Positions 1-54,100 of a DNA stretch of 64,000 nucleotides are shown here, one piece after another. Under the pieces are notes generated by a model that made no database searches, was not told where the DNA came from, and saw nothing but the letters and a program-made list of their open reading frames with translations. Each line of letters opens with the position of its first letter. Position 1 is the stretch's first letter. The stretch is from Paragordius varius. Its lineage: Eukaryota; Animalia; Nematomorpha. Location: the NCBI GenBank assembly GCA_964247055.1, contig OZ176052.1, positions 9,920,001-9,984,000 of the forward strand, in the 5' to 3' direction. The position numbers were made by a program, and so were the translations under genes.

Positions 1-2291
1 AATAATACATTCATCATAAGTCTGCTCCTAGTAGACTTATTAAAATTTCAAAGTGGCATAACTTCAAAAATATTGTGAATTTTTGAATTCTGTAAATTGG
101 AGGAGAGAAAGTAAAGTATATTTAACAAATAATTTATAGGTTTTATTAATGTTGCTTCAATCATTTGGCATTAAAAGGGGTTTACACAACCCCTGTTAAA
201 AAAATAGAAAAACCCTAAAACATGCATGCAAAATCAAAAGTTTTTTAGAAGAAATAGGTATGCATTTTATTCAACTATATTTTTTAGATTTTTTTGAGTT
301 ATCAAAATTGAAATATTTGCATACTTTGTGAAATAAAAAAATCATATCCAGTTTTTCAAATTCTTTAAATTGGAGGATAAAAATGATGTATATATAACAA
401 ATTATTTATAGGTTTTAGAAATTGAATGATCGCATACACATGTTAGTGACTAAGCTTCTTAAAAAAAATATATCTGGAACATACATGTAAAACCCAAAGT
501 TTTTTAGAAGGTGTGCAATTGATTTAACCATATTTTTTAGATTTAGATGTCATGGCGATCGAATTATCTGAACACTTTTTGCATTTTGAGGATGAAGCAT
601 TGAAGAATCTACTTATTTTATTGGATTTCATAAAAATTTTACTATTTGATATATAAAATTATATATTTATGTTTATTGTCAATAAATATATGATAAATTT
701 ACTTAAGTTTCAAGCGTCTAAAAATCATTTTAATCCACAGTGCACAAAATCGGAGGCTATAAAAAATATTATGATCAATCATATATATTGCATATTAGGA
801 ATATCATGGTGCTTGGTTTTAGGTCTAACGAATAATTTAGAGCTATATCCAATTTTGTGGTAATTGTTCCTTGAAAAGTTACAAATTAGGCAAATTTATA
901 ATTTTTTTTATGAAAGCTAAATGCTTCCCTTTAAAAATACCATTATATTTTGATATGAACTATATTCGAAAACAAAAATGAAATTTAAAATTTTAAGCGT
1001 AGGTTCCAAAACAACTTTTTGGACTTCTCTAAAATGGGCCAGTTTTTTTAAAAAAGCCGATGCGCGATATTACTTTAAAATTAATATTTGACAATATAAT
1101 ATATTTTTTAAAAAAATTTGGCAATCGTATTTTATGGTGCTTTAAGATATCACAAAAACACTTTTGTTTAACATTTCTATCATCTCAAAATTTTGATTAG
1201 CTTTTGCTTTAAATTTGGGGAAATATTTAGGGGTCTTTTTGGTCAAACTTTAATTTCCTTTAATAATATCATTAAATTATAAACTATATTTGAAAACCAA
1301 AATGAAGTTTGTTTAGAATTTTAAGCGTAGACTCCAAATAAGTTTGCCAAATTTGCAACCTTTCGATAAGGAACAATTACCACAAAATATTCCTAATATG
1401 CAATATATATGATTGATCATAATATTTTTTATAGCCTCCGATTTTGTGCACTGTGGATTAAAATGATTTTTAGACGCTTGAAACTTAAGTAAATTTATCA
1501 TATATTTATTGACAATAAACATAAATATATAATTTTATATATCAAATAGTAAAAATTTTATGAAATCCAATAAAATAAGTAGATTGTCCAATGCCCTCAA
1601 AATGCAAAAAGTGTGCAGATAATTCGATCGCCATGACATCTAAATCTAAAAAATATGGTTAAATCAATTGCACACCTTCTAAAAAACTTTGGGTTTTACA
1701 TATATGTTCCAGATATATTTTTTTCAAGAAGCTTAGTCACTAACATGTGTATGCGATCATTCAATTTCTAAAACCTATAAATAATTTGTTATATATACAT
1801 CATTTTTATCCTCCAATTTAAAGAATTTGAAAAACTGGATAGATTTTTTTATTTCACAAAGTATGCAAATATTTCAATTTTGATAACTCAAAAAAATCTA
1901 AAAAATATAGTTGAAATGCATACCTATTTCTTCTAAAAAACTTTTGATTTTGAATGCATGTTTTAGGGTTTTTCTATTTTTTTAACAGGGGTTGTGTAAA
2001 CCCCTTTTAATGCCAAATGATTGAAGCAACATTAATCAAACCTATAAATTATTTGTTAAATATATTTTACTTTCTCTCCTCCAATTTACAGAATTCAAAA
2101 ATTCACAATATTTTTGAAGTTATGCCACTTTGAAATTTTAATAAGTCTACTAGGAGCAGACTTATGATGAATGTATTATTTTTATTCAAAAATGTAAGCA
2201 TAAGGATTTAAGCATAAGGATGTAAGCATAAAGACGTAAGCATAAGGATTTAAGCATAAGGACGCAAGTAATACTTACCCGAACATGGGTC
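1..2291. mobile_element. Foldback-type (long inverted repeat) non-autonomous DNA element in a spectraplakin intron; left end lies outside the window
   Basis: Base 1 onward (aataatacattcatcataagtctgctcctagtag...) is the near-exact reverse complement of sequence ending at 2180. Arms are about 1-890 and 1340-2180, with an ~50-bp indel near 800-850. The right end continues into 5 copies of a 14-bp repeat (TAAGCATAAGGAYK at 2195, 2209, 2223, 2237, 2251). Confidence 0.85.
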
Positions 2292-12740: not shown

Positions 12741-15700
12741 ATGTCAAATAATTATTTTAAATTCAATTTTGCGAAAAAATTCAAACACTGCCCAGAAAAA
12801 ACATCAGAAATGAATAATTTCGTTAATTACTTTACTAAAATTGGAAAAAGTGTCAATATTATAAATATTGTTGGATGAAAAGGTTTCAATTTAAATAACA
12901 AACTCAAGTCACAGAATGCTAAACCCCAGGGAAGAGTCTGTTAGATAATGAATACAACGATTCGATAAAGGTGCCCATACAAATTTCGATCATAACCAAC
13001 TTTTATTGAGTGATATCCAAAAAGATTTCCATAAATAGAGAAAGCAAAAAGAATATCGGAAGATATTCTCGTATCATTTGGGGGTCAGTTGAACTCAAAC
13101 TCAATAGATAGTGAAAGGGAAAATGTTGATATCCTTAAAACCAATACGGATATAAGAGACGCAACTATTTTTCAAGACACTGATGCACCAAATTTAGAAA
13201 AGGAAGGCCACTCCTCAAATAACGAAACTAAAGCATATGTCACCAAATCATTTAATAAGGGTGATCTGAGTGAACGAATAAATGATACTTCAGAAATGCA
13301 AAGGCGTACAACATTAAAAAACAAATTTGTCCGAATGTTCCATAAAACTCCAAAAGATGATATCAAAAATATATCAACTAATGCAGCGGAAATTAAAAAT
13401 ACTTTTGCATATATGGGCAGGGTGACCAGACGTCCCGCTTTTTCACACTTTGTCCCGCGTCCCGCTACGTTTTTGAGTCCTGCTTTTTCACGATTATATT
13501 AATATTTTTTTTTAAATACATTTAAATTTTTTATAAAAAATTTATTTTTTTATCCAATTTTTTATCATTAGTTTTGTTTAAAATTTATATCAATTTTAAA
13601 ATGAAAATTTATTATTTTTAAATTTAAAATATTTATTTTTTTTGAATTTATATCAACATTATAAAAAAGACAAATTAATACCAAAATCGGTAGCACATAG
13701 CCGCAAGCATGATATTACAAAGCATATAGAAAGACAGAAACATAAAAAATGTTTAGATATGGCGGCATCATCTTACAAAATGATCGATTTTTATCTAAAA
13801 ACCGCTTTTGGAGAGGAAGAAGAGATTCGGCACTAGTAGAAGGCGTTTTATCTTCTCACGCCGTTAATCACAATCATTCTTATAGATCTATGGATTGTAC
13901 CTCACAGGTTATTCGTACCTTATTCAATAAAAAAATTTTATGTGCCCCATTGTATTCAATGTCCTTTCGCCACATGCATTTTCTGAAATAAAAAAGATTT
14001 GCTAAAAATTAATTTCATATCGCTATACTTTGATGCATCAAATCACAAGGAAACAAAATTATTTCCCACTTTAATAAGATATTTTGATCCAACCGGAGTA
14101 AAAATTAAAATTTTAGATTTCATATCTCTAAAAACAAAATCATCGCATATTGCGCTGACAACACCAATACGAACTTCGGTGGAAAATCAAGGAGGGGAAC
14201 AATAAAAATTTTCATAAATTAGCAGGTAATCATAATCAAACATTTATGGCGTTGGGTGTGCAGTGCATATAATACACAACGCTATTCAAACAGCTGCTGA
14301 TTTATTACCCCTAGATGTTGAAATGTAGTTCTTAAAATATATTCCTTTTTTATATAAACACGGTACGCTTTGAAACGCTCAAGGAATTTTGTGAAAATGC
14401 ACAAGTTCAATATCAAAAAATGCTTGGATATTGTAAAACTCGTTGGTTAGCTCTTCTGCCAACTGAAAGAATTTTAAAAATGAATGATCCTTTAAAATTC
14501 TATTTTTTATCACAGCACAAATGTTTTACAACTTTGTAAAAGTTTTTTAAAAGTGATTCTTCAAAAATATAATTAGAGTTTTTACATAATCAAGCTTCTC
14601 TCAAAATGTTATAAATTGTTAGAAGGTGACAAAATATTGGCAATCGAAGTAGCCAAGGAAGTTAGTAACCTAAACTTCCAATTTCAAGAAAGGTTAAATT
14701 TTAATTAACCATCCGCAATATTATAAATAATTTAGAAAAACAAGGCTTCATAAATCGTCAAGATATCCTGTACCATATAAAAATGTTTTATACAAACTGT
14801 ACAGATGATTTGGAAGACTGGACGATGCAATTCAATAAAATTGATCATTTTCATTGGATAACATTAAAACCAGAATATAATTGGTGCGATGTTCAAAAAT
14901 CATTTGATCTGCATCTCCTAAAAATTCCCAAAAAGTAATCTTTTAGAAAATGATCTTTTTTTGAAGTATAGTTCAAAAATATATTAATAATGAAAAACTT
15001 AAATTATGGCAACAGAAAAAAATACAGTAGAAAAGAAATGGTTATAAATATTTCATCATTTTGAAACAAACTATGTTCTAAACAATAATTTTAAAAATTT
15101 TAGAATTAGCACTATCTTTGTTTGGAACTAACGCTGCTATTGAGCGCGTTTTTTTCCACAGTAAATCAGGTGTGGACATCGGAAAAATCAAATTTAAATG
15201 TTGAAACTTTAAAGGTTATTTATCTGTCAAATATAATTTGCAAATTCTGAAGACTCTACAACATTTTAAAAAATTATGACAATCTGCTAAAACGCATTCA
15301 CTCAAATTAAAATATTTTCTTATATTTTTAAGTATTTGTATTAAAAATAAATACTACAATAAATTTTTTGAAACATTTTTGGTTGCCCCCGCCCCCCTAT
15401 TTCAGATTTGTCCCGCTTTTTCCTTCAAAAAATCTGGTCTCCTTACTTATATGGGGAAAGTAAAAGTTAAACAACTTCTTGGCATATCCAACAATAAGGA
15501 GAATTTAGGCGGAAAAAATTCTTGCGAACTTTCAGATAATGTTAACAATAAATTTTTCAGCCCAGTTCTGATTCAACCTTTAGCAGGTGATATCAAAAAC
15601 AAATTAAAAGCAGATATTGTCGAAATCGGAAATACAATGAAAATTCAGAACCGTAAAACACTCATGCATAAAAACTTTTAAAAAGGCAATCCAAAATGAT

Positions 15701-17389: not shown

Positions 17390-17852
17390 TTAAACATTCG
17401 CAGAAGCTTCTTGAGAACGTAGGCGAGCATGTTCATTTGTAACTTTTATAGCAAGTTGCTGAGCACGTTCAACAATTTGTTTGCGTTTAAGGGCAGAGAC
17501 GGCATGCGCTATTTCAGCACAGTAAGTTTTGTTGTGCATCATAAGCACTTCCAATTCCTGAAATAAAAATTGCAAATTTTACTTTAACATTATTCACTAA
17601 AACTTTTCTGAATCCTGAAGGTAACATATGCTTGGTTCTTTTATGGCTCCCATAACCAACATTTGGCATCAACTTTTGTCCTTTAAAGCGTCTGCGGACA
17701 GGATTATCAATACCTTTTGGTTTTCTCCAATTAGGCTAATATTATATATTTATAAATACTTTCAATCTTTTGTACCGATCACAATGATGACGGGTAAACT
17801 TATTTTTCTTCTTCTTGACAATGTTGTATTTTTTTGACGGATGGAGAGCCAT
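17390..17852 (-). CDS. RPL32: 60S ribosomal protein L32 (eL32), 137 aa
   Basis: Exons 17852-17760, 17735-17583, 17557-17390 give [31 protein letters not shown]|[51 protein letters not shown]|[55 protein letters not shown]. Introns are 24 and 25 nt. Confidence 0.97.
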
Positions 17853-17881: not shown

Positions 17882-18384
17882 ATGCCTAAAATACGATTCA
17901 AAAATCCGCCGCCAGAAGGGTGGGATCTGATTGAACCAACGTTGGATGAATTAGAATGTAAAATGCGTGAAGGTACTAATATTTATAAAATTTTAGCGGA
18001 AACTGAATCCCATGAAGGTAAAAGAATAGTGGAATCATTATGGCCCATCTTCAAAATTCACCATCAAAAATCTCGTTATATTTACGACCTTTACTATAAA
18101 CGCAAGGCTATATCTAAAGGTTTTTTATCATTATATATTAAAGAATTGTATGATTTTTGTATTAATGAGAACATTGCAGATAAAAATTTGATTGCAAAAT
18201 GGAAAAAGCCCGGGTACGAAAATTTATGCTGTCTAAGATGCATTCAAACAAGGGACACAATTTATGGAACAAATTGTTTATGCCGAGTTCCCAAAGACAA
18301 ATTAGAATTAGTAATCATATTGTTTATTATTAGGGTAAAATTGTCGAATGCGTTCAATGTGGCTGCCGTGGCTGTTCTGGATAA
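17882..18384 (+). CDS. BUD31: BUD31/G10 splicing factor, 143 aa
   Basis: Exons 17882-17972, 17997-18119, 18144-18310, 18334-18384. Removing 24, 24 and 23 nt GT-AG introns restores the canonical MREAETE, KAISKELY and [20 protein letters not shown]-stop. Contains [14 protein letters not shown]. Confidence 0.97.
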
Positions 18385-19932: not shown

Positions 19933-22900
19933 TTATTTCTTTTTCTTGACATTTTTACGCTTCGGAATTTTAGTCTAAATCAATATAATATAAATTAAAA
20001 TAGGCTGCGTTCAATTTATAAAAATAAATTAAAAAATTAATTATCTCTTTGGGTTGTTGACGCTCCTCAACAACAGTAAAAATTATAAAAACGAGTTTTA
20101 ATATATAAACGGTTGATTTGCTGATCATTTGCATAGGCACTTTTAAAAATATTATTTACAATGCTTAAATACATCTTAAACAACAAGAATAAAGATGTTA
20201 CATTGGTTATCTATCATTTAAGAATATTTGATTGCTTGTAATTATTGATAGTACCCTATGAAAATGCTATAAATTGTATGATGAATCACTCATAAATTTT
20301 TTGTTGTCCGAACAAAAAAAATATACCCAAGTGTTATCAGTTGAAGCATTAATTGGATTTTCGGATAATTTATCCATAATTGCATCATTTTCATTGTCAT
20401 AAACCGGAATTGACTGATCTGTGTTTTGACTAGCTTTATCCTATAGCAAAAATAATAAAATTATAACATATAATATAATCTTATCCATACAATAATATCG
20501 AATTTCGAAAATATAAATAAATCAACGAGAAGGTAGAAAACAATATTACTCCAAATCGGAAATTTTATAAGGCTAATACTTTCTCATTTCCGTGCTTTTA
20601 TTATTGTGTAATTGGGTTTCAAATGTTAAAGTATTTTTATTTAAGGCATTAATAAACTGTAAAAAAAGACATTCCAATATATAAATTTAAGAGGTAGGAA
20701 TCTTATAATATACAAATAATTTTTTAGTTAATGCATGATACTATTATTCGTTCAGAAATGAAAAGCTCCAAATTACAAAATTCATACTTAAAACTATCTT
20801 ATAGTGAGTGACTAAATTACATTAACGTATTTTATCTTTGCATTCGTATGTTGTTAATAAATATTTTATTAGAGATATCCCTTACTCCCTAAAATTGAGA
20901 GTATAAACCAGTTAAAAAAACAATTAATGCAAAATAATCTTAGAAAAAAATAAACGTATTAATTTTATAAGGGATTAAGTAGGTGTAATCTGTTTTTGTT
21001 AGCTACAATAACAAGTAGGAAAAAGCAGCGATATTAATATTTTTAATTCAATATTTAATATAACATAAAAAACTCATGCACAAAGGAATCTATATATTTA
21101 TAATGACTAGTAGAAATAACCAAACTTGAGCAAATAGTAACTAATTTATAATTATAAGCAAGATGATTGATTCAAATGGCTTTAACATCTAAAAGAACAA
21201 AAATAAATGACAGTAAAACTATCACATTATAAATATGCGTAGGATCGTGTTAGAAGACACACACCCAAAAATATGAATATATTATCTTTTTAAGAAAATA
21301 ATAAAATAATTTTCGTTAAATATTCAAATTAAAAGATTAAATATTACATAATCTAAAAATATTTTTTTATTAGCCCTTAATTACATTTGGGATTTCCTAG
21401 CCCAGGCAATTTTATATATAACACCGATGATATGGGCATCTAAAAATATCATGGCCTTTATAGAAAAAACATCTCAAACTATTCCCCCAAATATTTGTCA
21501 TTGTTTTATTTATTGGTAAAAAAAACTAAAAAACAAAAGTAAACTAGAAAATTTGAAATACCCTAACTATTATGCAATTTGACTGCAAATATTGGCAAAT
21601 TATTAATATTAAAATCGACTATTTGTTTCGGATTCAATAGTAATCAAGTAGGATTCAAGTTACAAAAATGTAATAAATAATGCATTTTTGTTCAAAATAT
21701 TTATAATTATACAAAATGAGTTTTAGAAAAAAAATTTTATAGCACTGAGTAGCCCCAATATATATGTAAAATTTTATATAAATTTATACTTTTGCTTTTT
21801 TCTTTTCCGAAACAGTTTGGGTACCTTTTGAATGTTTGTTGATCACAGATTCAATATCTTGACTATTCTAAACAATTATAAATACATATTAGTAAATCGA
21901 AACATTATCAAGTGCATAATTGTCAATTTTTTCTAATTATATTACTATTTAAATGAAATATTTACAAATGAAATTATTATATAGTTTTAACCACTAATTT
22001 CTTTATTCCTAATTTAATAATTTTAAATAAATTTAAAAATGTCAACACATGAAAGGAAGCGAAATAAGGAGGAAACCGATTTAGGGGTATTTGGTAGACC
22101 AGATTTCGCAATTGCACATTTTGTTGCTTTTGAACTAGATGTAGTTTTCACATTATCACTAATTATGGATGAAGTTTCACTCGGGGTCGTAATAAAATCA
22201 TTGATATCTGTCCCATCCAAAACAATAAGGTTCTCATTGTTTTTGTTTAATGCAGTTCCTTTGTTTTTCTTTTTCTTCTTTTTACTGACTTCTTTGATGG
22301 CAGGCGAAGCTATAACCTTTTTTACCGGCAACGAATGTTCTGGAAAGATTTTGATTAATTCTTCATGCAATTGATTAAATAGTTCCGTAATATGTGTTTT
22401 GGGTTGGTTTGCCAAAACATTTTGTTTTGTATCCTCAAGTGGTATATTCTTAAACGAGCAAATTAAAATGTTAGATAACCTTAAACTATTAGCCTTATTA
22501 TTCTCATCACCGGAAATACCTGAAACTGTTTGAGCCAAATTTTTTCCATCCAACGAAATTAGAGGACAATCAACATTTATTGCACCATTAAACAGTAAAT
22601 ACACCAACTCTAACAGCGTAAATTGAGGACTGAAATCCAGGTTTTCCGCATTATCACGCAATAATTGATTTAAATGTTCGATATAAAAGGTGGTTACTGG
22701 ATCATGTGAGTGTTTTATATCTTGGCGCTCTTTTAAATATTTTACTATGGACTCAAAATCAAACGGTGGCGGTGTAATTTTTTTCTCTATGTTTGGCAGT
22801 GAAGCGGTCAAAGCCGGTTTAAATATATCAGTCAAGGAAAGTTTATGTAAATCTACTGGAACGTTTTCCGTCAAATTTCCAAACTGTATTTGATGAACAT

Positions 22901-23671
22901 CAGTTAAAGATTTGGTGTTATCAGTTTTATTAACATTTTCATTTGGCAATAAGACAGGAGATCCTGAGAGACCATATTGATGATTTATAGTCTGATCTTT
23001 ACTGGTTGTGTCCCTATTCAACTGGCCATGTGGCTTTGAAGAAAAATTATTTGGCACATAATTCTTGTATTTATCTCGGTTATAATTGGGATCGTATGGA
23101 TGACGATACGGTATATTCTTAGTTTCATTGTTAAAAGAAGGTTTTCGTCTGGGCTTATTTAAATTATCCACAAATTTAATTTTGTTTTTATGATGTAGAG
23201 ATGAAATTGCGTGCTGATGTCTCTCATATGCAGAACTATTTTCATCCAATAATTCTTTATCCAAAAAATCAGATGGTCCAAATACATTATCAGCATTGTA
23301 ATCGTAATTTTCTGATATATTCCGTCGCCGGGCATTATTTTGATGATGATAATATGGTTTAGATTCTGATTGATACTTGGGAGATGTCAAAACATTGTCA
23401 TAAAAATGCGCATTAGACAAATCTTTATTAATATCGTCTACGTTTGCCCAATGATTATTGTCAGTATGATATTTCGGATGGGATTGTGAAAAGGGGTGAA
23501 CCTATTAATTAATATATTCATAACTTTGTGTGGATAGTAAGGAGATCTTGGAGCACCCTTTCGTATTAACGCCGGTATTTTGTTAACGATAGGGTTTTGC
23601 TGTGCAAAGGATATTTTATCAATGTGAAATAATTGTTGCTTTGTATAAAAATACTGGTTATTAGGCTTCAT
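19933..23671 (-). CDS. Uncharacterised ~600-aa protein, candidate divergent GIGYF (PERQ)-like translational repressor
   Basis: Exon 23671-23525, a 23-nt intron at 23502-23524, then the long open exon 23501-22077 (well supported). Lower-confidence phase-0 exons 21867-21790, 20440-20327 and 19974-19933 (stop). N-terminal YFYTKQQLF, a GYF-like segment PQFTLLELVYLLFNGAINVDCPLISLDG, and a KKKKKNK tract. Family assignment is inference. Confidence 0.6.
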
Positions 23672-23845
23672 CAATTACTGTAATCTGATATTATGAATGA
23701 AATCTAATTAAATTAAAATTTAAAACACTGTAAAAATTTTAAAAATACGTTAACTGATTTAAAGTTTTAAAGCAAATATGTCTTAGAATTATCAATAAAC
23801 GCGATTTAACATGTGTTATATCTTGGATACACATTCATTTCAATC

Positions 23846-25502
23846 CTTCTATTCAAATTGGGGTAGTTGGATACCCCAGGCTTAAATATTAAATATTTCA
23901 ATAAAATAAATTAAAACCATGGCAAAAGTTTGCACCTATATAACATTAATGAACCGAAATATAAAAAAAATTTATTCAAAAATACTTGATATTACTTATT
24001 ATAGGGTAAAACTTAACGGTATTTTAGCCAACTTATCATGTTTGCATAAGCTAATTGCAAAAATATTACAAAATATCCCACTTTTTCTGTTTATATCAAT
24101 GAATGTGATTTTAATAAAAATGTAAACTTAATTTTACGCTTAGAATCAACTAAATACGATATTTGGCAAAAATGTTGTAAAATAAAAATAACGTCGAAGT
24201 AGTTTGATACGGAATTTTTTAAAACTAAATTTTAGATAATTTATTTTATTATATAATATCATTGGATAGAAGCATAAATTTAAATTTGGACCGTTTTTTT
24301 CAGTAGTTTAAATATATCAATATAAATATGGTCTGGGGTATTTAGATATCCCAATTTGAATCGAAATGTTAACACCTGGATACAATACATTTATTTGAGT
24401 CCTTGGCAAATTGGGGTCGTTTATATCCCAGGCCTGATTAAAATGAAATACTTCAAAAAATATGGAAGGAATTGAAACAATGGCAAAATTTTCACTTATT
24501 ATATAAAATAATGGACAGAAATATATAAAAAAATTATTCAAAAATACTTGATTTATTTTATATTGTAAAACCCGTAGGCATTTGATATGGATTCTTTATT
24601 AAACTGAATTTTATTTAGCTTTTTCAGCTTATTTGTATATTTTTATTAATACTGAAGCAAAAAATTATATTAGGACCGTTTCTTTCAGTTTTAATTATAT
24701 CAATAGTCCGGGGTATTTAGATGCCCCATTATTATAAACAGTTTAATAATACAGTCAAAAGAGTAATTAGAAGTTAATTTAACACTTTGGATATTACGCA
24801 TATATTTCAATACCGAATTGAGGTCGTTGGTAGACCCTATTTAAACTCATATATTAAAAATATGATATAAATATAAAATTATTGCAAAAGTCTGCACTTA
24901 TAAACATTGATTCGCCGAAATATAATAAAGGATTTGATTTAATAAAAATAATTTCTTGTAATTACTTATTAACACTTGGAAACAACACATTTATTTCAGT
25001 AGTTCGATTCAAATTGGGGTAGTTGGATACCCCAGGCCTGTTTATAATTAAATTCCTAATAAAATATGGAAGGAATTGAAATCATGTCAAAAGTTTGCAC
25101 TTATATAACACCAATATATAAAAAAATCGATTCAAAAATACTTGATTACATTTATTTAAAGGTAAAACTCAAAAGTTAAAATTTAACCAACTTGACATGT
25201 GTGCATTACCAAAATTTAAATATAATATAAATAAACCACTTTTTCTGTTTCCATCAATATTAGATATGATTAATAAATTTGATTTATTAGCTTTAAAATT
25301 AAATAAACAGATATTTTGCAATAATGTAGAATAAAAATGGCGTCGAATAAGTATATGAAACTTTTTCTTCACAAAATAGATATTTCGAATTATTTATATT
25401 TATATTGGGATAGAAGTATATACTTAAATTAGGACCATTTTTTTGGTAGTTGTAATAAATAACTATAGTCTGAGGTATTTAGATGCCCAATTTAAATCGA
25501 AC
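23846..25502. mobile_element. Cluster of 3-4 related ~350-520 bp MITE copies in tandem
   Basis: Imperfect ~30-bp TIRs (gttcgattcaaattggggtagttggatacccc ... gaggtatttagatgcccaatttaaatcgaac). Best copy 25002-25502, another at about 23846-24365, degenerate copies between. Shared internal motifs aaaagtttgcac, aaaaatacttgat and taggacc. Confidence 0.7.
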
Positions 25503-26884
25503 TGTAAATATATAACCTAAAGGTAATAATCTAACATGACATATTTGCATTGGCTAAATATAAAAATATGAACAAATCTTTTTTATGTTTATATAATATA
25601 TTTTAAATTAACTTAAATTCTAGCGTTTTACAGTATCCCCAAAAAACCTGGTGAAATATATAATCTTCTGCTAGGAAATATTAGGATGGTGCTTTTTGTT
25701 TTATCCCTTATGAGTGAAAGTTTTCTCACTTTTGTGGTAAGAACTCCATATCAGAAAATGAATAAATTACGCCTATTTTTTGAAAAGTTTTGCTGAAAGC
25801 TAAATGCTTTTAGATGTGGCTCCGAATGTCCCATAATTTCTCGCTCTTCTAAAATAGGCCACTTCTGTTTAAATAAAAGCAATGCAGAGATTGCGAAATT
25901 ATCAATATATCCTAAATTGATATTAACTAAAAAAAAATAAAAATGCATATATTTTTCAAATATTTAATTTTGAGCAAAAATTTTTTAAAGAGTACTTCAT
26001 ACTACATTGAGGCACCATGGAAATAATAAAAATGCTTTAAGACATTAGAAAAAAGCTTTCTACACAGAATATTGATTTAAAAATTCGTTCATCTTTAAAA
26101 TTATAGTAGATAGATATAATTTTTTTGACAAGAATCTCCAATAAAGCAAACAAACATTTTTAAAATTTTGAAGCGAAATGTTCTGCCTTATCAAATTATA
26201 TAGAAAAAGTTTTTTAATATTAAGCATTTTTAAACTGTTTCTATGATACCAAATATTTTAAAGTGCGTTTAAAAATTTTGGTAACAATTAAATTTTTAAA
26301 AAAGTATGCATTTAGAAAATATTTTTAGTTGATGCCAAAACTTAGCTTATTTTTAACCTTTTTATCTCGCAATATCGGACTTTTTGCGTTTATTTAAGAC
26401 TCCCTTACCATTTGTGCTAGTTTCATATTCCAGAGAGATTAGAAATTTAAATATCTTAAAAAATATAAAGGTATTAAGCCAAATTTGCATTATACACAAA
26501 AATTAAAATGTAAAATTGTAAAATCCAAATCTCAAACTTTTTTGCTGTCCGCACACACCTAATATACCATCACGCCTCCATAAAACAACTGAAAAAATAT
26601 TTGAAATATTATTTGGAAACATATAATATTTAATTTAAATTTTGCCTCTTTATTAACAACTTGGGATTGAAATAAATATTTCGACATTTGGCTATAATAT
26701 TCTTTTTTTGGCAATCACTATCTAAGTATAGTATATTGTCCATTTTTTCTATTTTATTAAGTATATTTGGATCTGTCAAAAGTGGATTTGACCCAAATCT
26801 GGATGGACAACCTTATCGGGTCGCATTTTTTCTTCCGTTAGACTCCTTACCTCGTCTCTGATAGAGATTTTTTGTATACAAATA

Positions 26885-39770: not shown

Positions 39771-40281
39771 TTATTTTTTGGCTGCTTTCTTCTTGCGGTG
39801 AACGACCTTCTTAGCTTTTGGTGCTCGTGGGGATTTTGCTATAGAAATAAAATAATTATATTATAGTAAGCAGACATATCATTTGCTACATTCATTGCAA
39901 TAAACGCTTATTAAATAACAACATACCAGTCTTCTTTTTATGGTGAGTCTTGGGTTTTTTAGCTTTTTTGGGACCGGCTTTCCTTTTCTTTTTGTGATGA
40001 TGAGAGGCAGCTGGAGCAGCAACCGTACCGGCAGCAGCGGCATGATGATGGTGATGAGTTGCGTGATGAACGTGATGTTTGGCTGGGGACTTTCGCTTCT
40101 TGTGATGCGCGGCGCCAGCTGCTTTCTTCTTGGGGTGAGCGGCCCGTTTCCTTTTCGCCGGGGCACGTTTGGCCGGGGTCGCAGCAATTTGATGTGATAA
40201 CAACTATAATTATGTGGTTATAGATAAAGATACATAAAAAAGAATATATTAATTTGTTATTACTTGTTCTATATCTGACAT
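39771..40281 (-). CDS. 120-aa Lys/His/Ala-rich basic protein (linker-histone-tail-like or protamine-like), no globular H1 domain
   Basis: Exons 40281-40264 (MSDIEQ), 40203-39927 and 39838-39771 (AKSPRAPKAKKVVHRKKKAAKK-stop). Introns of 60 and 88 nt with canonical GT-AG and consistent phase; 363 nt total; locally GC-rich. Confidence 0.8.
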
Positions 40282-43200
40282 CGGTGAAGTTCTAGGACTC
40301 GGTGGTAATTGTTGAAGAACGTAAGAGTTTGGAGGATAACTTAATATCTTATAAATGAATTCAAAAATTTTTCCGTACCAAAAATTAACGTATTCTCCAA
40401 TGTTGTTGTAAAATGTTAAAAATAAATTTTAGTTGTTGGAAAAATTAAAAGATAAAAAATATTATATTTTGATTGTGTGTTTAATGTAAAAAAAGATATC
40501 GTATATTTAATATATTTTTTGTGGTTTTAAAATAAAGCTTATATGAACTCTTTACTTCTCCTCCCTTTTCACTCTTTTTTCTTTCGTTATACAATTATAA
40601 TATTATGTGCGTACCGTTCCGAAACCCCCTTTGTTCTCTTCATAATTTTGCGAAACAGAAAAAATAAGAAAAATTTTGTGTTTGTTATGGCACTTTCAAA
40701 GCCTCATATCTCGGACCACAAACGTGTTCTGGACACAAAAACATCACGAGTCTATAGAAAACAGGTGATATTTTTGGACAGTCAGAAAATTTTGGCAGTT
40801 TTATCCGTTTAAACGGTTTAAAAAGAGGTTTTATAAGCGCTACATTGAGGTTACGCAAAAAAAGTTTGGTTATTTTAGGCCAAAATAGCCCGTTGAAAAC
40901 AACTTTTTTCTATCAAAATTAATACCTTTTGATAGTCTGTATATCACTTAATCAAAGCTCGAAATTTTGGTAGCCATAAATATTAAGATTTTTGAGTTAT
41001 TTATCTTTAAAGTTGGATATTCAAAAACAAAATTTGGTGTTTTTTTGTATTTTATATACAACATATTTCGCATCATAGTGTGCATCGTTAATGCACCCTC
41101 CTGCCTTTCTTTGATGAAAAGATGGAAGAAATATTTTTAATATGTTGTTTCATTAGTCTAATGTCAATTTTTTAACCCAATAATTAATTTTCACAAGTTT
41201 ATCAAATTTGGCAAGCAAAGTCCCTTCTTTAATTAATATGGCAAATATGATTTATGTAACTTTTTATTACAAATTTAATATAAAATGATTCTTGTAAAAT
41301 TAAAATTTATTTGGGCGCTAATCACGCAACCGATTTTTTGGATAAGATTTTAATTAATTAATGGCAAATTCATATCGGAAATTTTTAGTGATTTAAATTT
41401 TTCATTTTCAGTTTATTTTTTGTTTTCATTTTTTATTATTATTCTTTTGTTAGCCGACAAAACAAAATACGTTGAACAATCAAATATTTTTGCATCATCC
41501 ACTTAAAAAAATTATGATTTTAATCCCACGATTTTTATTAATTTAATTATGTGGCTTTGGGAGAGTGCTTCGATTAGGATCCTTAGTAATCAACATTGAT
41601 TGTAAAAAAATTAGTGCATTATAATATTTGAGATGGTATCCCTTAAAGTTCAACCCGGCAGACTTATCCAATACAATACATAAGATTATATACCAGGGGT
41701 GTCCAACAAGCAGCACGCGAAAAATTTGGAATCCATAATTTGCAAAATATGTTTCTAAAATCTTTGTAAAATGGATATTTCTTAAACAAATTTTCTTGCC
41801 CTTTTAGTTTTATCCTGTTTGAATACCCATATATATAATTAGATTCACCAGATGGAGTTAAAAATATGGCCCGCGAAGCCATTTTTATTTGACATTTCTG
41901 GTATACATTTTTTAAGCTCAATTCTTAATATGTAGCATAAATGATATTTGGATGTTATGGATTATAGATATGATCTCTTTTTTCTCATTAGGTTAATAAG
42001 ATATTACTTTTGATTGATTTCAAGTGTTTGGAAGCATATATTATATTAATGTTATTTTTAATATTTTTATCATAGCGCGCATGCAAAACGAGTCAATATT
42101 AATAACAGATAAATAATACATATTGGAATTTAATTTTTTATCGTTCTATAAAAGACCAGAAATATATTGTATGGTGTTAAATTAAAATATCCTATTAAGT
42201 ATAAGATTCAGTATAATGTTTGCGAAGCCTGAGTTATGTTTTCTTCTTAGTTCTATCTTTATAAAACATTTAATGTCAACGTTATTAAAAACATCAACAC
42301 TTATATAGTTTTTGAGATTAACCGTAATACTACATAATTTTTACTAATTTCTAGGAGCGTATGGTAAAACTATGATCGTCGTAATTCGACATATTTTAAA
42401 ATCTTCTTTTATAGTTTATTGAAAACTAAATTCCACACAATATACTAATTTGCTATGCACCAAAAATTATCATAGGAAAAATTATAAAAGAAATCTCATT
42501 CTAAACAATATCTCTATATTAAGAAACAATGGGGGCTTGCAAATTCTTTTGTGTAGGCTTATTTAATTACATTTATAATAATTGCGAGTTTAACAGTTTA
42601 TCGAAAATTCAAATCTTTGGCAAGCCATGCGGACTGTTAATGATCCAAGGTGTGATTTGTAATCATATTACTACCTATGTGAAAAATATGATGGTAATTC
42701 AAATATTTGAATAACAATCGATAATGTTTGAGATTAATAAATTAAAATTTTCAAGTGCATGTTTTTAGGGTAATGACCGTTGTCGCCATTTTTGTGTTAT
42801 ATGGTATGTAAAAAATAGCGTGTGGATAAAAAATTATATTTGCCCACGGCCGACAGTGATAATGAAAAAATTAAGTACAAAATTTAAACCTTACACAAAG
42901 CGTGAGTTAGAGCCATAATCATACTACTTGTTTAATAAATCTTATAAAACTTAGGTCTAATTAATATTAAATAGAAATTGTGTAAAACAACTGATATTTA
43001 GGAAAATTTGATAAAATTTTCGAAATTAGTAACACTTAATATTGTATCCGATTTTAATTACAGGTTTCATCCATTCATGAGTAAAAATTGCTTGCCGAAA
43101 AAATTAGAGTTATATCTAGAGATCCAACCAATATAAATTAAATAAACATAACCCGGTACACATATACTTTCAAATTAAATTTCGATAAGCGATTAATACG

Positions 43201-45408
43201 GACACATATCCAAATGATATAATAAACCATACGCGTGCTAGGAAACAATTCTGAGACAACCTTTTGTTAAATTAAGGATTTGAATAACAAATAGTAAATT
43301 ATAGACGTACATTCCTCAAAAGAGTTTAGAAATTTCACCTTATATGGACTTTTTTGCACAAAAAGACAGACTTTATTATTGAGGGAGGAATACTCTTTCT
43401 CTGATGAAATAATCATAAGTAATCAAATTTCGATCATAGACATTAATAATTTGATTTTACCCTAATCTCGATCAACAAAGTGCAAAAGACCGGTTATGCA
43501 TCTCGATGTTAAAAATTCCTCTTCAATAGGTATTTTTACTAAACTATCATAAAATAATATTAATGCTGTATAAATATCTGTGGTTTTCTATAAAATAAAT
43601 AGACCCCATAGAGGTACATAATAAACAAAAAACAAATGGGTTCTCATTCTAGATTTTTTATTTATATCGTCAGTGATGCTCAAACCGCGGGAAACAGGCC
43701 ACATTCGGCCCTAAATATATTATAGCGCTAAATTATATATTAATTTTTTTGATTACTTATTTGGAGTATAAATTTGCATATTTGTCTAGCTATGTAATCA
43801 TTTATCGGTATTATATGGTACACGGCCTAAAATAACTATATTTGCTCTGTAAAATTTATTGGTGAGTACCTCGAATGTGTACCATTCACTCAAATTCACC
43901 CTTGAACAATTCAATTTCACCATAAAAATAAATCATGTGTTTTTGGGCTATTATAACTCATTATTAATATGAAATGTATCTTTATAGCATACTTTATTAT
44001 TTTTTCAGTAATATTTTAATTTAAACAAAATTTTATTTTTAAAAATATTAAAAAAATAGATAATTTTTAATCTGAAAAAACACATAATTTTATGGTAAAT
44101 ATGAATTGTATGAGGGTGAATTTGAATTATTCAAGGTGAATTTGAAGTATATATTAACAGCATATACAGAATATAATATAATGATTATCAATCCATTCGA
44201 GTAATGTAGGTTTATAATGGGATTTCTTTGAAAACATAACTATGTTCCAGCATCTTAGGCTTAACTTTTACAATATAGTCATTACTGTGCAATTGGTTGG
44301 GGAAGCGATGGAAACTTTAATGGCTATATTATAATGTGGCCAGATAGGCTGTTTTTCGCAGTACAGTACTGGGTTTTCAGAAAAAAATGCGCCTGTTCTG
44401 AGCCTTTTTATATTGCTTTTCAAAATAAAAAAATTAATTAATAAATATATATTAATTACCATTTATATATTCAAAAAATTATTTTTGAATTCGATATAGT
44501 ACCCTCTGTAAAAATAACCCCGTAATTTATAAAGAAATGGTTCATTTTGCGGTATAAGATTGGCCTATATTTAATTGGTTAATATTTTATTTTCTGCTCA
44601 AATTATACATAAAACTTAGGATTGCAGCCTTTCGAGTGGAGAAACTAGAAATTCGGACTCCACACCGTAAGATTAAGGCTAATGGCTCTTTCACTCAGGG
44701 CTTCCGAAAAAAGAGGTGTCTCAAAATTTAAAAAAAATAATTTTTGATATTTAAATAAATGTTTGATCAAGTTTAGAAAGTTCATTTTTTGTTATAATTA
44801 TCAAACAGAAAATTATATAGAAAATCGTTATTTCATTAACTATAATTTAATATGTATTATATATGGCATATGATTTCGAAATAATTTTTTTTTTCGTAGA
44901 AATTAAGAATTTTTACGTTTTCTATACTCATTAGGTGGGAGGTATGATATTACTTAATTTTTTATAATTTCTTATTTTTTTGCATAAAAAAATTTGATAT
45001 TTTGTTGAAGCGTACTTCTAACGATTTCGAAGCATGATGGAAACGGTATAACGCTTTAAGATATTATAAAACCTTATTTCAAAATAATTCGATGGTGTTG
45101 AACATTCAGAATATAATTTAAAGGTTTGTTTGCTTGCAAATTTTGGTGAATTTTCGTAAAAAACACAATTTTTATTTAACATAAATTTGAAAAAGAACGA
45201 TAATTTAATCAAAGTTCTGAAATATATGACATCTTATTAATGGTAGCGTTTAATTTTTTTTCTGATTTATTGATATCTAGAAGAAAAATTAATTTAAATT
45301 TGTGGTTATTTCAAACAACTATGATTTTAATATTGTTTAGTCAATTTTATATTTTTATGAATAAACGCAAATGATATGTCATTAATCAATTAGTCATAAC
45401 ATACGCAA

Positions 45409-48400
45409 TCTATAAATTTATAAAAATGGAAAATTCTGGCTTTGTGATCTGTTTCCAGAAAACCGGTAGACCCATTTAAATCCAAATGTCGAAAAAATAT
45501 AATCATTCATGAATCCGACAATAGCTTCGCCCTTTTTTAAATTAGGCCCCAGGTTCGGGCCCAACCCATGTAAAAAACGGTTTTTTTTTGAAAACAGAAG
45601 TCCACAAAAATCGTGTCTTTGAGACAATTTTCCGGAGAACGTGTTGGACCATTCAATTTCAAATATGATTTTATTTTCCATTGCGCCGAACATAGTCGTC
45701 TCGCTTTTTTAATTTAGGCACTCTCTTTACCCGCTCCCCTCGTAAAATGCCATTTTTTCAAAAAAATTAAGTCCACAAAAATAATTTTTTGAATCTATTT
45801 TTGGTCCAAGGTATGAGACCGTAAAAATTCATTAAGGATTCCAAATATTCCCTATTAAAAGGCAAAAATTTAAGTCAAGCGTTTCTTTGATGATAGCTGC
45901 TGAGTAAGGAGCTACCCGCGAAAAACTGACCCGTCATATCGAAATAGCGTGCTTTTGGGGCTAAATTCAGAAAACCTATCAGGCCATAAGAATTCAATAG
46001 CTGCTTAAAGTATTACCCTAAAAAGTCAAAAATTTTAGTCGATTTTTAAATTAAATAGGCCCTTTACGTCCTAAAAAATGCGCTATCATTGAACTATTAT
46101 TTAGTTTTGAAGCCATTCATCCATAAACAATAGTAAAGGCAAATTTTTATATCTAACTACATTTAATTGGCCTCTGGGTAGGAGGTTACCGGAGTAGAGC
46201 CTGCGCCATCATATCGATACAGCATGACTTTGGAGCCAAATTTCAGAAAACCTATGAGACTATGTGAATTATTTCAACATTGTGCCGCATAATAAAATTG
46301 CTTATAAAATCAAAAATATATTATGCTCATCTATATATTTATAAAAATGGAAAATGCTGGCTTTGTGATCTGGTACAGGAAAACCGGTAGACCCAATCAA
46401 ATCCAAATATCGAAAAAATATAATCATTAATAAATGTCCCGACAATAGCTTCGCCCTTTTTTTGAAATAGGCCCCCAGTTCGGGCCCACCCCGTATGAAA
46501 AACGGGTTTTTTTTGAAAACAGAAGTCCACAAAATCGTGTTTTTGAGACAATTTTCCGGAGAACGTGTTGGACCATTCAATTTCAAATATGATTTTTGTT
46601 TACTTATTTTCGATTGCGCCGAACATAGTCGAGCCACTTTTTTGATTTAGGCCCTCTTTTTACCCGCTCCCCCCGTAAAATGCCATTTTTTTCAAAAAAC
46701 AAAGTCCACAAAAATAATTTTTTAAATCGATTTTTCGTCCACGGTATGAGACCTTAAAAATTCTATAAAGATTCCACGTATTCCCTGTTAAAAGGCAAAA
46801 ATTTTAGTCCACCGTTTATTTGTTGATAGCTGCTGGGTAAGGAGCTACCCGCTAAAAACTGATTTTTCATATAACTTTGGGAACTGTTTCCGGAAAACCG
46901 GTGATCCCAATCAAATCCAAATATCGAAAAAATATAATCATTAATGAATGGCCCGACAATAGCTTCGCCCTTTTTTGGAATTAGGTCCCCAGTTCGGGCC
47001 CACCCCGTGTGAAAAATGGGTTAAGTCAATTTTTTGGAGAACGTGTTGGAGCATTCAATTTCAAACATGAATTTTGTTTACTTATTTTTGATCGCGCTGA
47101 ACATAGTCGAGTCACTTTTTTGATTTAGGCCCTCTTTTTACCCGCTCCCCCCGTAAAATGCCATTTTTTTTTTGATTGTATTTTTTTGTCCACGGTATGA
47201 GACTGTAAAAATTCGAGAAAGATTTTTCGTATTGCCTGTAAAAGGCAAAAATTTTAGTCAAGCGTTTTTTTGATGATAGCTGCTGAGTAAGGAGTATCTA
47301 TCATATGTATAGCATGTTAAAAGATATATGGATATTAAAACATTATTTATGGTAATCTATATATTTATAAAAATGGAAAATGCTGGCTTTGTGTTCTACA
47401 GGAAAAACGGTAGACCCATTCAAATCCAAACTTCGAACCCCCCCCCCAGACGTCCGAAGGACTTTCTCGGGCTGCGTAGCAGCACGAGATTCACGCTAGT
47501 TTCAAATAAAATTGTCTGTCTCAATATTCAAACGAGACAATCATCACAAATAACATTGTAATATCCTGCTTTTTCAATCTCAAATCTTGTTTTAAGTTAT
47601 AGACAGTTATAATCAGATTGATATCATATAAAAGAGTTAGAATAGCAATAGCGAAATAAGAAAAAGTTTCATAATTTAAAAATTATACGCCTTTAACCGA
47701 GATTTTCTAAGGATTTTTTTTGCAATGAATCAGACTTTAATGATTTTAAATATAAAATCGTATTAGTTTATTGTTTTATTATTTTTTATTTATCTATCAT
47801 ATGTATAGGATATCAAAAAATATATGGATAATAAAAAAACATTATTTATGGTCATCTATATATTTATAATTGAAAGTGGTGGCTTTGTGATCAGTTTCCG
47901 GAAAACCGGTAGATCCATTCAAATGCAACTGTCAAAAAAATATAATCATTAATGAATGCCCCGACAATAGCTTCGCCCTTTTTTAAATTAGGCCTGCAGT
48001 TCGGGCCCACCGCATGTAAAAAGCGGGTTTTTTGAAAACATGTCCACAAAAATCGTGTCTTTGAGGCAATTTTCCCAAAAACGAGTTGCATTCGATTTTA
48101 AACAGGATTTTTTTTACTTATTTTCGATTGCGCCGAACATAGTCGGCTCGCTTTTTTAATTTAGGCCCTCTTTTTACCCGCTCCCCCCATAAAATGCCAT
48201 TTTTTTAAAAAAAAAATTACGTCCACAAAAATAATTTTTAAATCTATTTTTCGCCCAAGGTATGAGACCGTAAAAATTCAATAAGGATTCCAGGTAATCC
48301 CTGTTAAAAGGCAAACTTTAGTCGTGCATTTCTTTTATAATGGCTGCCGGGTAAGGAGCTACCCGCTAAAAATTGATCCGTCATATCTGTGCCTTTGGGG

Positions 48401-49660
48401 CTAAATTTCAAAAAACCTATCAAACCATTTGAGTTCAATCCGTGCTTAAAATATTACCCGTAAAAAGTCCAAAATTTAAGTCGAGCGGATTTTTTAAATT
48501 AGCGGTTAATTAGGCCTTTTACGCCCTGAAACATGGGCCACCATAGAATGATTTTTTAATTTTGAGCAATTTTTTTCAGAAACTAATGAGAGCATATGGA
48601 ATCAATCATGATTCCAGGTATTCTCCGTAAAAAGGCAAAAATTTTAATCAAGTTTTTTTGTATCAGACTCTGGGTAGGAAGCCACCAGCCTAGAACTGCG
48701 CCATATCAAAATTGCGTTGTTTAGGAGTTAATTTTCCGAAAACTTATCAAACCATATAAGTTTTATAAGAGCCTGAAATATTACCCCGTAAAAAGGCAAA
48801 AATTTTAGTCGAGCGGTTTTTTATATTAGAGGTTAAATAGCCTCTTAGTAGGGGGCTACCCGCCGAAAAATGCGTCACTATATTAATACAGCATGCCTTT
48901 AGACCCAAATTTCAAAAAACTTATGAGACTATGTGAGTTCAATAAGGCTTAAAATATTTATTACCCCTTAAAAAACAAAATGTTTTAGTATAGGGTGTTA
49001 TTTCAATGAGTCGCTAAGAAAAGTTTTGCGCCCTGAAAAATTCGCCGTCATAGAAAAATTTTTTAGTGTTGAAGCAATATTTCAAGAACTTTAGGAATAA
49101 TGGAATTATAATTCCAGATATTCCCCATATAAAGACAAAAATTTTGCCCAACGCTTTTTTATACCTGCCTCTGGGTAAGAAGCTACCCGCCAAAAACTCC
49201 ACTATATAAAAATTGCGTTGTTTTGGAACTAATTTAAAGAAAACTTATGGTATATGAGCTCATTTAAAGTTTGAAATATTACCCATAACTAGGTAAAAAT
49301 TAAGGTCAGGACTTTTTTTATTAGACGTTAATTTGGGGCCTTTATGCCCTAAAAATACGCCATCATATAACGATTATTTAGTGTTGAGGTATTTTTTCGA
49401 AAAACCCATTAGACGATAGTCTCAAAGATGATTCCAAATATTTTCCCTATAAAGGCAAAAAATTTAACTTAGCGCTTTTACTATATAGGCCTATGGGTAG
49501 GAGTCTACCGGTTTAAAACTGAGACGCCATACAAAAATAGCGTGGCTTTGGAGCTAATTTTCAAAAGACTTAAGAAGCCATACGAGTTCAATAAAGGCTT
49601 TAAATATTATCCAAAAAAAGGAAAAATTATAGCATAGCGGTTTTTTCCGTTAGCCGTAAT
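45409..49660 (+). mobile_element. Tandem array of Helitron-derived units grading into a ~163-bp satellite
   Basis: Helitron-like 5' ends A|TCTATATATTTATAA at 45409 (variant), 46330, 47356 and 47855. Long shared internal blocks (ccgacaatagcttcgccc, cagttcgggccca, tacccgctcccc, gtaaggagctacccgc). About 9 diverged ~155-180 bp repeats at ~48250-49660. Confidence 0.75.
47356..47499 (+). mobile_element. Complete 144-bp mini-Helitron
   Basis: Starts TC after an A (47355) and ends CTAG before a T (47500). GC-rich hairpin ctcgggctgc-gta-gcagcacgag at 47466-47488, 7 nt before the CTAG. Confidence 0.8.
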
Positions 49661-51122: not shown

Positions 51123-54100
51123 TGTGTGCAATTATTTTAACAATATATTTTTTTTCATGATATAGCTTATGACCAGCGTATTTATTTGCCATTAAAGTTT
51201 TTATTTGTTTACGACCTATTTTTTAAATATTGAAGGAAAATCAAAAGCGGGCAAAAATGAAAATTAAGGATAATTCAAAAAATAAAAATAAAATTTGAAT
51301 ATTATGGTTTATTATCATTTAATGAGATATTCCAATATATAAATAGACTAAAATCCTATAGTTGGGGTTTCTATAAAATCTCAGCTCAAAAGATGGCGTT
51401 CTTTTAACACACAAATTTTTCTATAAAACTGGATTAAAATATTTTTTTTTTAATTATCTAGCTAATTTAACATTCAAATTTTATTCAGTAAAAATACGTA
51501 TAAAAAAACTAAAAATATTGTTTTTTATTTTTTCATTTTTTTTTCATCTGGTTTTGAATGTAAAAAAATTTATAATGATTTATTTTGGAATCTCAAAATG
51601 AACAGGGAGTTATAAAGTATATAATTTGTGCAAAATAGGATTTAAAAGTAGTAGAATATCAACCAAAAATCCTTACGAATCCCTGTAACAAGTCTGTTTA
51701 AGACAAATTAATATTTTTATTAGGATTCGTACGGATTTTTGGTTGATTTTCTACTAATTTTAAATTTTATTTTGAATGAAATATATACTTTATAATTCCC
51801 ACTCATGTAAGATTCCAAAATAAAACACTATGAAATTTTTATTAACTTATAAACCAGATGACAAAAAAATGAAAAAATAAAAAATAATATTTTTTGGTTT
51901 TATTTTGATATATAAGTTTTTTTTACTGAATAAAATATGAATATTAAGATTTTAATAGTGAGTTTAGCTAGCAAATAATTAAAAAAAATATTTTAATGTA
52001 GTTTCATAAAAAATTTTTGTCTTTTAAGTGTGAAAGAAAAACGCCATCTTTACCTGATATTTTATAGAAACTCAAAATATATGATCAAAATGATAATAAA
52101 CCATATATCCTTAATTATCCTTAATTTAGTTTTTAGCCGATTTCGATTTTCTCACAATATTTCAAAAACTAAGTTGTCAACAAATAAAAAATTTTGCGGC
52201 AAATGAATTCGCTGATCGTAAGCAATTTCATGAAATAAAAATTTTTTTGTTAAAAAAATTAACCCTCTTTTTTGCACACCGTATATATATAAGGGGTGAC
52301 CAAACGGTCGACCGCGGTCGACTTCGTGATCTCGAGATTTTAAAACGTAACCGCCTGAAATTTTTTTAAAAAAAATGTAAAATATATTTTTGTATATTTT
52401 GTAAAATTATAATTTATTCTTTGTGTTTAAAAAATTCACTTGTTAAAATATATTAAACTTATTTAATATTAATAATATTTATTTAATCATAAGTATTTTA
52501 ATTGAACTTTAAATTATTCGTAATTTCCTTATAAATTTTGATTTAGCAAAAAAACACCCTTTATATTTTAATATAATTAAAGCCCGGAACAGGGTTGGTA
52601 TTTGGAAGTTTAATTGGAGGCCTGGTTCTTTGAAATTCAAAAATGAAACGGGGGTAAAATTTTGAGACCGGAACAGGGGTTTCCTTAAAGAAGTTACGGT
52701 TTCCGAAACCGAGTCATTTGGAATCGGTTCCATTTTGCTTCCCGACTCTTCATCAAATGATTATTCAGAAAGTTTATTTCATTAATATCGAAATAAGTTC
52801 TTTATCAGTAGATCAAAAAATCTGCCTAAAAAATATGACTGTGGTCGTCTTCAAGTGTTAAAAGGAGATCAGAAAATGTCAGCATGGTAATTCCGTTTTA
52901 TTTGGATGCGAGAAAAATGTCATATGATCAATCATTTAAAAAAAATTCAACAACAAATTTTAGTCTTGTGATGGGAAAGCCGAAAAAATGTTATTATTCA
53001 ATCATATTTAAATAATAATAATATAAACATTTTGGCGGTAGAACCGGAACCGGGCTGTTCCCGCAACAATGAAATAGGGCCCTGCTATGTGTTTTCGGTT
53101 CCGGTTCGTAAGCCAGGTCAATGGATAAGCAGTTCAACTGTTATACATATTAATTAGTTTTACCCATTTTTCCGAATCGAAACGAGGAAAAATGGAAGAA
53201 ATTTTTATAATTTTTTTGATATAATTTATACATATTAAAACTATTTTTTATAACAAAATAATTTAATTTTAAACACAATTTTTATGATTTAGCTAATAAC
53301 CTATTGTAATAGTATAAAACAAGTTACTTTTAGCTCCTAGGACAATACAAGCAGTAAATAAAGCGTATTCCGAAAATGTTAGTCTTAACTCCATAAGCTC
53401 TGAAACCACTTCCGATATATCATCAATAAATTGAGCTTCTTCATTTTTAATACTGATATGTTTGAAAGATTTAAACGGAAGCCAATGATAACTCGAGTTA
53501 GGGATATTAGAATTATGGATTTGAGAATTTACTTTGAAAGTCAATGGATACAATACATGGCATTCCGTGCTATCAGAACTAAAAGTAAAACGATTCGGTA
53601 ATTAAAAAACCCTGTTAAAAGTTATGAGTGATAAAATATCGATTGTGTAACGCTATCAAAAACACGGTCTCTGTCTAATAAGATATTTATAATACCCTAC
53701 TAAATAGTAATTAAGTTTAACTCATAACATTATTTATTCCATTAAATTTGAATAGATTTTGTAAAAATTACAAATCAAATGAAAAATAACTTAATTTACT
53801 TTAATGTCCAAAATTATTGTCGTGAATATTTTTATTTTGAAAAAAATTAATTTAATATTCACACCACCTTAGAAAATTTAATCTAACTTATATTTGTCCA
53901 TTATCAGTCTAAATATTATTAATTTATATTACTTTTTTAATGATTCTTGATGTTCGAATTCGGTTGCGGTTGTATCAGCCGTCGGCTCTCTCTTCATATG
54001 TAATGCCAGCCAAACTAATACCATCTCGAAATTGCTAGATTTTAACAGAACAATTTGATCATCTTGGGGTAGTATCATGAACCCTGGCACCATTTTAACA

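Follow-up and report, generated by a model that had tools for sequence, protein, structure and literature searches.

Bimodal intron lengths have been described in neodermatan flatworms, where tapeworms and the monogenean Gyrodactylus salaris show modes at ~32 and ~58 nt, the short mode dominating in G. salaris at intron positions 1 and 2 (PMC4040987). Peaks at a minimal intron length in other eukaryotes are discussed in the same paper (PMC4040987), and in the dicyemid mesozoan Dicyema japonicum the mean intron is 38 bp in a genome with 49% repeats (PMC6736024). For horsehair worms, one genome paper reports a GC content of 26.9% in Gordionus montsenyensis; intron sizes are not discussed in the horsehair-worm genome literature, as far as it is searchable.

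Here we describe a stretch of 64,000 nt of Paragordius varius DNA (the whole of it is called the window below), along which GC runs from 24 to 34%, close to the value for G. montsenyensis. The explanation that we judge probable, as a whole, is that one gene of the window (the focal gene) contains a real 23-nt intron and that this would be a member of a genome-wide class of AT-rich introns of ~22-32 nt with ordinary splice signals.

Materials and Methods

Introns were compiled in an exact and an estimated set. The exact tiny introns come from the focal gene (one), BUD31 (three), RPL32 (two), RPLP0 (two), annexin A (two) and annexin B (two), and the exact ordinary introns are 22 annexin introns together with the 404-nt zinc-finger intron of HR3. 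Boundaries of the 11 tiny introns outside the focal gene were set by homology or by paralogue comparison. RPLP0 and three annexin paralogues lie in a second sample, 200 kb of another contig (G000:C1:3000001-3200000). The annexin exon frames were anchored one by one with the Pfam Annexin model, after which GT..AG pairs were picked by coordinates, and the choice among pairs was aided by translating 9-15 codons on each side of the junction.

Estimated lengths were computed by hand, genome-wide, as the nucleotide gap minus three times the profile-position gap between neighbouring exon matches of one Pfam family, for eight families (Cpn60_TCP1, Ras, UQ_con, Pkinase, Proteasome, AAA, DEAD and Arf). 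This estimator is exact modulo 3 and tolerates matches extending into the intron; at protein indels it is wrong by multiples of 3. Introns with a length divisible by 3 are absorbed into a single match and go unseen, so the tiny class is under-counted; in several Pfam matches there are in fact 7-11 surplus codons, stops among them, as expected from such introns. GT..AG joins were also counted ab initio against control dinucleotides in the window plus the 200-kb sample (264 kb), with and without a GC-contrast filter; this underpowered method gave no excess at any length.

Table 1. Positions, sizes and supporting evidence of the genes and introns discussed in the text.
Feature	Position	Strand	Size and composition	Evidence
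Focal gene, exon 1	23525-23671	minus	ATG (23669-23671) plus 48 codons, 35% GC	
Focal gene, putative intron	23502-23524	minus	23 nt, GT..AG, phase 0, 13% GC	sequence
Focal gene, exon 2	22023-23501	minus	492 codons (23501-22026), no ATG, stop 22023-22025	
BUD31 gene	17882-18384	plus		aligns with human BUD31 from spliceosome structures
BUD31, intron 1	17973-17996	plus	24 nt, in frame, no stop	8-residue insertion exactly there relative to human and other BUD31 chains
BUD31, intron 2	18120-18143	plus	24 nt, in frame, no stop	second 8-residue insertion, exact position
BUD31, intron 3	18311-18333	plus	23 nt	BUD31 similarity in frame ends here
RPL32, intron 1	17736-17759	minus	24 nt	exon positions in chain 7obr_e
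RPL32, intron 2	17558-17582	minus	25 nt	Pfam Ribosomal_L32e, exon frames at 18-67 and 67-108
HR3/ROR-type receptor, ordinary intron inside zinc-finger domain	61349-61752	minus	404 nt	zf-C4
HR3, probable candidate of the preliminary description	53909-53932	minus	24 nt, GT..AG, 8% GC	unsupported
Three annexin paralogues (G000:C1:3099407-3196819)	L011:9407-L012:1736; L012:3735-7893; L021:944-6819	minus; plus; plus		
Annexin A, introns 1-9			72, 97, 58, 150, 287, 134, 508, 32 (or 26), 26 nt	
Annexin B, introns 1-9			406, 117, 88, 77, 1203, 569, 687, 25, 27 nt	
Annexin C, introns 1-9			3474, 149, 119, 291, 67, 448, 165, none, 86 nt	
Gene with both size classes	C2:14215845-14219084		28, 1968, 731 nt	estimated
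Gene with both size classes	C5:1290517-1292804		23, 502, 1253 nt	estimated
Gene with both size classes	C2:5988594-5989160		84, 25, 59 nt	estimated
Gene with both size classes	C3:8847802-8849755		46, 1388, 31 nt	estimated
Gene with both size classes	C4:4446798-4448615		26, 1417 nt	estimated

Results

A candidate 23-nt intron in the focal gene

A preliminary description of the window had proposed a frame-keeping intron of 23 nt at 23502-23524. The GT and AG are exactly there on the minus strand, and excision makes a 49-codon frame that has an ATG continuous with a 492-codon frame that has none. Left unspliced, the 49-codon frame runs past the donor and stops after 29 further codons. Since the 492-codon ORF lacks any ATG, an upstream exon is required for its translation. 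When all GT..AG pairs that join the two ORFs were listed, the 23-nt join was the sole one below 80 nt.

By arithmetic from dinucleotide frequencies, chance would give ~0.8 valid joins of the GT-AG type, 20-35 nt long, at this junction, so that a GT-AG join by itself is little proof; the case for the intron comes from the coincidence of the join with a sharply bounded AT island. GC is 13% inside the 23 nt vs ~44% in the flanks, and the inner 19 nt hold one G or C in total, whereas windows of 19 nt that are equally AT-rich account for 0.35% in ORFs of at least 200 codons and 5.4% in all DNA sampled. At the acceptor, the TAG doubles as the stop codon after which the long ORF begins. The candidate has the GT and AG ends of a U2-type intron and its removal mends an otherwise broken frame; like the other members of the tiny class it falls within ~22-32 nt and forms an AT island, in the 8-28% GC range of the class, between GC-richer exon flanks. 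On these features we hold the stretch to be probably a genuine intron.

The resulting model of the focal gene has two exons and 541 codons in total. An interspersed repeat with copies on another contig begins upstream at 23822, 150 nt beyond the start codon, and no convincing exon was found beyond the stop codon; with repeats from 23822 upward and no exon past the stop, the further introns of 200-1350 nt that the preliminary description had given this gene could not be reproduced. The predicted protein had no relatives in Pfam, in a word search, in PDB, in ESM Atlas or in an HMMER search over 1.84 billion representative proteins, and its ORF received low recognition in ESM Atlas. The searches turned up no transcript-derived protein of this species. 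We read the focal gene as probably lineage-specific, with the 23 nt as its only supportable intron.

Two further observations concern the protein. Its initiator would be the sole methionine of the 541 codons. Residues 7-15, encoded by exon 1, fit the pattern Y-x-Y-x4-L-hydrophobic, which we take to resemble eIF4E/4EHP-binding motifs; assignment of the gene to the 4E-T or GIGYF type was considered and dropped, there being no EIF4E-T/GYF domain and no Pfam, PDB or HMMER match.

Tiny introns in conserved genes

Homology across the junction is available for the tiny class in BUD31, in RPL32 and in annexin C, which lacks intron 8. The first two introns of BUD31 appear as insertions relative to known chains (Table 1), and at the third the conserved C-terminus resumes in the frame reached by dropping 23 nt, as read from the sequence. 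Aligned with chain 7obr_e, RPL32 reaches residue 54 at the close of exon 1, and the second residue of the exon 2 frame corresponds to residue 56 and its first to residue 55. Because residues 54 and 55 are consecutive, the exons abut across intron 1 with no gap or overlap. For the second RPL32 intron, the estimate from Pfam positions (25 nt) equals the exact GT..AG length. Two introns, of 25 and 23 nt, were placed in RPLP0.

If retained, BUD31 introns 1 and 2 would each add 8 residues without triggering nonsense-mediated decay; four exact tiny introns have a length that is a multiple of 3, and these two are the ones without an in-frame stop. The RPL32 and BUD31 genes lie 29 nt apart. This spacing is echoed by a cytohesin-like gene (L017:4842-5315, minus strand), other exon frames of which resemble Sec7 and PH regions by eye, and a gene similar to that of dynein light intermediate chain (P-loop; L017:5365-5574, plus strand), which are apparently head to head with ~50 nt between their first open frames.

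The three annexin paralogues are clustered within 100 kb, with nine intron positions in common. At position 8 the intron is precisely absent from annexin C, whose frame reads through, and this fixes the boundaries of intron 8 in annexins A and B. Position 9 has an intron of 26 nt in annexin A, 27 nt in annexin B and 86 nt in annexin C. The predicted introns of annexins A and B provide an exact demonstration of what the preliminary description had claimed, namely that both size classes occur within single genes, and estimated lengths place both classes in at least five further genes (Table 1). As homologous annexin introns span 25 nt to 3.5 kb, they form a natural series for intron length change.

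Intron size distribution

The exact set comprises 12 tiny introns of 23-32 nt (23, 23, 23, 24, 24, 24, 25, 25, 25, 26, 27 and 32 nt), 23 ordinary introns of 58-3474 nt and none at 33-57 nt. The 146 estimated introns are distributed with 22 at 19-31 nt (mostly 22-26 nt), two at 32-52 nt (43 and 46 nt), 17 at 53-100 nt and 105 above 100 nt. When exact and estimated introns of at most 100 nt are pooled, 3 of 60 lie at 33-57 nt vs ~18-20 expected from an even or log-even spread, a trough with P ~1e-6 to 1e-7. These results support the existence of two size modes below 100 nt, which on the predicted gene models would consist of a cluster at ~22-32 nt and a population from ~53-58 nt.

The preliminary description had stated the sizes as either 23-25 nt or at least 60 nt. 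Its two classes are borne out, but the limits were too narrow and really lie at ~22-32 nt and at ~53-58 nt and up. The range between is poorly populated, as it had said, with rare cases inside it. The continuum over 20-100 nt that it had named as the contrary outcome was not seen among ~180 introns, the trough at 33-57 nt having P ~1e-6.

Across these ~180 sampled introns, ~70% exceed 100 nt and the tiny class is a minority of ~15-30%. The estimated tiny introns amount to 22 of 67 introns in Ras, Arf and UQ_con and 0 of 79 in the other five families (P = 4e-9), and as they are all confined to these three small-protein families the sample is not neutral. The tiny class is therefore unevenly spread over genes and may favour small proteins or early coding positions. 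Tiny introns stand at early intron positions in the focal gene and in RPLP0; the reverse holds for annexins A and B, where they are the last two (8 and 9) of nine.

A 38-nt candidate in a WD-repeat gene was left out of the sets, as it has alternative joins and no Pfam anchor. Two observations were made in passing on the small GTPases. A tandem Arf-family array (G000:C5:1125946-1317278) includes two adjacent exon matches that overlap, giving negative intron estimates, and some copies in it may be frameshifted pseudogenes. Intronless small-GTPase matches of the same length, score and E-value occur at G000:C10:1742354-1742872 and G000:C11:1307069-1307587, and the pair may have come from duplication in the recent past or from a haplotype left uncollapsed.

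Splice signals and repeats

No class-specific splice-site signals emerged. The donor is GTA in 10 of 12 exact tiny introns and in 22 of 22 ordinary annexin introns, a difference that is not significant (P = 0.12); the GTT donors are those of the focal intron and BUD31 intron 2. Acceptors are T-rich followed by AG in tiny and ordinary introns alike, and the exon sides are similar too. The preliminary description had gone on from bimodal sizes to suggest two splicing modes. The sizes are bimodal as it had said, in 35 exact and 146 estimated introns, but donors and acceptors do not set the classes apart, so that the notion of two modes derives from the length void and from nothing else.

Matches to the unlinked 200-kb sample cover 14.5% of the window and include pieces beside the focal gene as well as within one of the HR3 introns. 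Such repeat-rich DNA argues that the tiny introns do not come from general compaction, in agreement with the preliminary description, which had called the DNA TE-rich and not globally compacted. Interspersed repeats at 43880-49657, 23822-25522 and 13413-15451 have up to 11 copies in the 200-kb sample, many of them with decayed open frames and a recurring peptide pattern.

Other genes of the window

In HR3, two frames ~400 nt apart match zf-C4 at positions 2-25 and 23-70, on either side of the ordinary intron listed in Table 1. The preliminary description had also given HR3 a 24-nt intron, probably the one at 53909-53932. Only 9 open codons follow this candidate, so that a micro-exon no longer than 9 codons would have to be assumed, and no Pfam or PDB anchor for such a micro-exon was found; the claim is therefore not sustained, and the donor could equally well belong to an ordinary intron. 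Of the spectraplakin gene, to which the preliminary description had given 13 introns of 79-627 nt, only one exon with an EF-hand and a weak match of spectrin type came to light. A galactosyltransferase matched nothing but an ostracod protein, at 29% identity, and BUD31 was too conserved to place the animal. A short frame at 39882-40291 on the minus strand is GC-rich for this genome and encodes a Lys/Ala/His-rich basic peptide, recalling linker histone or protamine.

Discussion

In the explanation that we favour, tiny introns would be removed by the standard spliceosome, each being recognised from end to end as a single AT island flanked by GC-richer exons, and their length would be near the shortest span that the machinery permits. 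Ordinary introns would need ~55 nt or more to keep 5' site, branch point and 3' site at their usual distances. A length of 23-27 nt is below the space normally thought to be needed for the factors that recognise splice sites and branch point. The void at 33-57 nt would fit two assembly geometries, and would also fit one machinery with a sharp minimal-length optimum. That a single animal has two physical modes of spliceosome assembly, with a "ruler" acting on units of ~23-30 nt beside a conventional mode for introns of at least ~55 nt, is an idea that we entertain but consider doubtful; under it, intron positions could switch between modes in evolution, as annexin position 9 may have done.

At the focal junction itself, the intron could be dispensed with if the frame had been shifted within 23441-23501, either by a single wrong base in the assembly (an insertion or deletion) or by a real mutation in a gene undergoing decay. 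Both frames are open over these 60 nt, where short runs of C and of T closely follow the acceptor, chance alone would supply ~0.8 joins of 20-35 nt, and the protein is without relatives that might arbitrate. A frameshift would, however, have to coincide with an AT island bounded exactly by GT and AG, like those of the 11 verified tiny introns, and with an acceptor TAG that is the very stop opening the long ORF. The assembly has only 44 contigs, and the conserved genes read here show no frameshifts; we regard a frameshift as very unlikely. Another gene model, in which the intron is the 86-nt one, the upstream exon is a different one or the ORF is not expressed, is likewise improbable, though less so. 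The 86-nt GT-AG join, the next longer after that of 23 nt (donor at 23587, acceptor shared), is also in frame, but it drops 21 open codons of 40-50% GC and has 34% GC overall, vs 11-24% in the short introns seen here. The lack of relatives, the low ESM Atlas recognition and the additional introns in the gene model of the preliminary description speak for such another model; against it stand the interspersed repeat upstream of 23822 and the fact that a 492-codon open frame in DNA of ~30% GC cannot arise by chance.

The wider size pattern has its own alternatives to a real tiny class with ordinary signals. If the gap were an artefact of sampling, the true distribution would be a continuum over ~20-100 nt with a peak near 25 nt, and estimates of 43, 46 and 53 nt, the unverified 38-nt candidate and a total of only ~180 introns from few families and one 200-kb region leave some room for this. 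Yet the count of 3 in 60 falls far below the ~18-20 expected, and the same void appears independently in the exact and the estimated sets, and we find such a continuum unlikely. Tiny introns may instead be spliced by a distinct route, for example without U2AF and with 5' site and branch site recognised as one unit, in which case the 33-57 nt void would be a forbidden zone between two geometries. The nearly empty range, the tight clustering at 23-27 nt and, on general knowledge, the absence of room in 23 nt for the usual spacing of factors point that way, and a distinct route is compatible with our preferred explanation. Donor and acceptor signals shared by both classes, and an annexin position at which two paralogues have a tiny intron but the remaining one has 86 nt, point the other way, and on balance we think a distinct route fairly unlikely.

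If RNA confirms these introns, natural matched pairs will be available, one paralogue having a tiny intron where another has an ordinary one, and with such pairs and a nearly forbidden size range the minimal intron length and the number of assembly routes would become directly testable. Gene predictors and read mappers with a default minimum intron of 20-60 nt would mis-annotate many genes here, the expected errors being frameshifts, split genes and small insertions, and these could add to reported "gene losses".

The distribution described here shares with the minimal-intron peaks of other eukaryotes a sharp, species-specific minimal length, ordinary GT-AG ends and a broad long tail, but differs in that the peak is followed by a void and not by a gradual decay. 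In model animals, minimal-intron peaks lie far above the peak seen here. Like the genome studied here, that of Dicyema belongs to an animal parasite and combines very short introns with abundant repeats (PMC6736024); nearly all Dicyema introns are short, however, whereas ~70% of those sampled here exceed 100 nt. With neodermatan flatworms there are several likenesses: two modes below 100 nt with a tail to many kb, size classes that share genomes and genes, and a parasitic life with repeat-containing genomes (PMC4040987). The differences are that the short mode lies at ~23-27 nt instead of ~32 nt, that the next population begins at ~55-60 nt with the range between almost empty, that the tiny introns of the annexins are the last two and not those at positions 1 and 2 as in G. 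salaris, and that a different animal group is concerned, the window bearing an HR3/ROR-type receptor. The pattern predicted from these gene models is a more extreme variant of the bimodality of flatworms.
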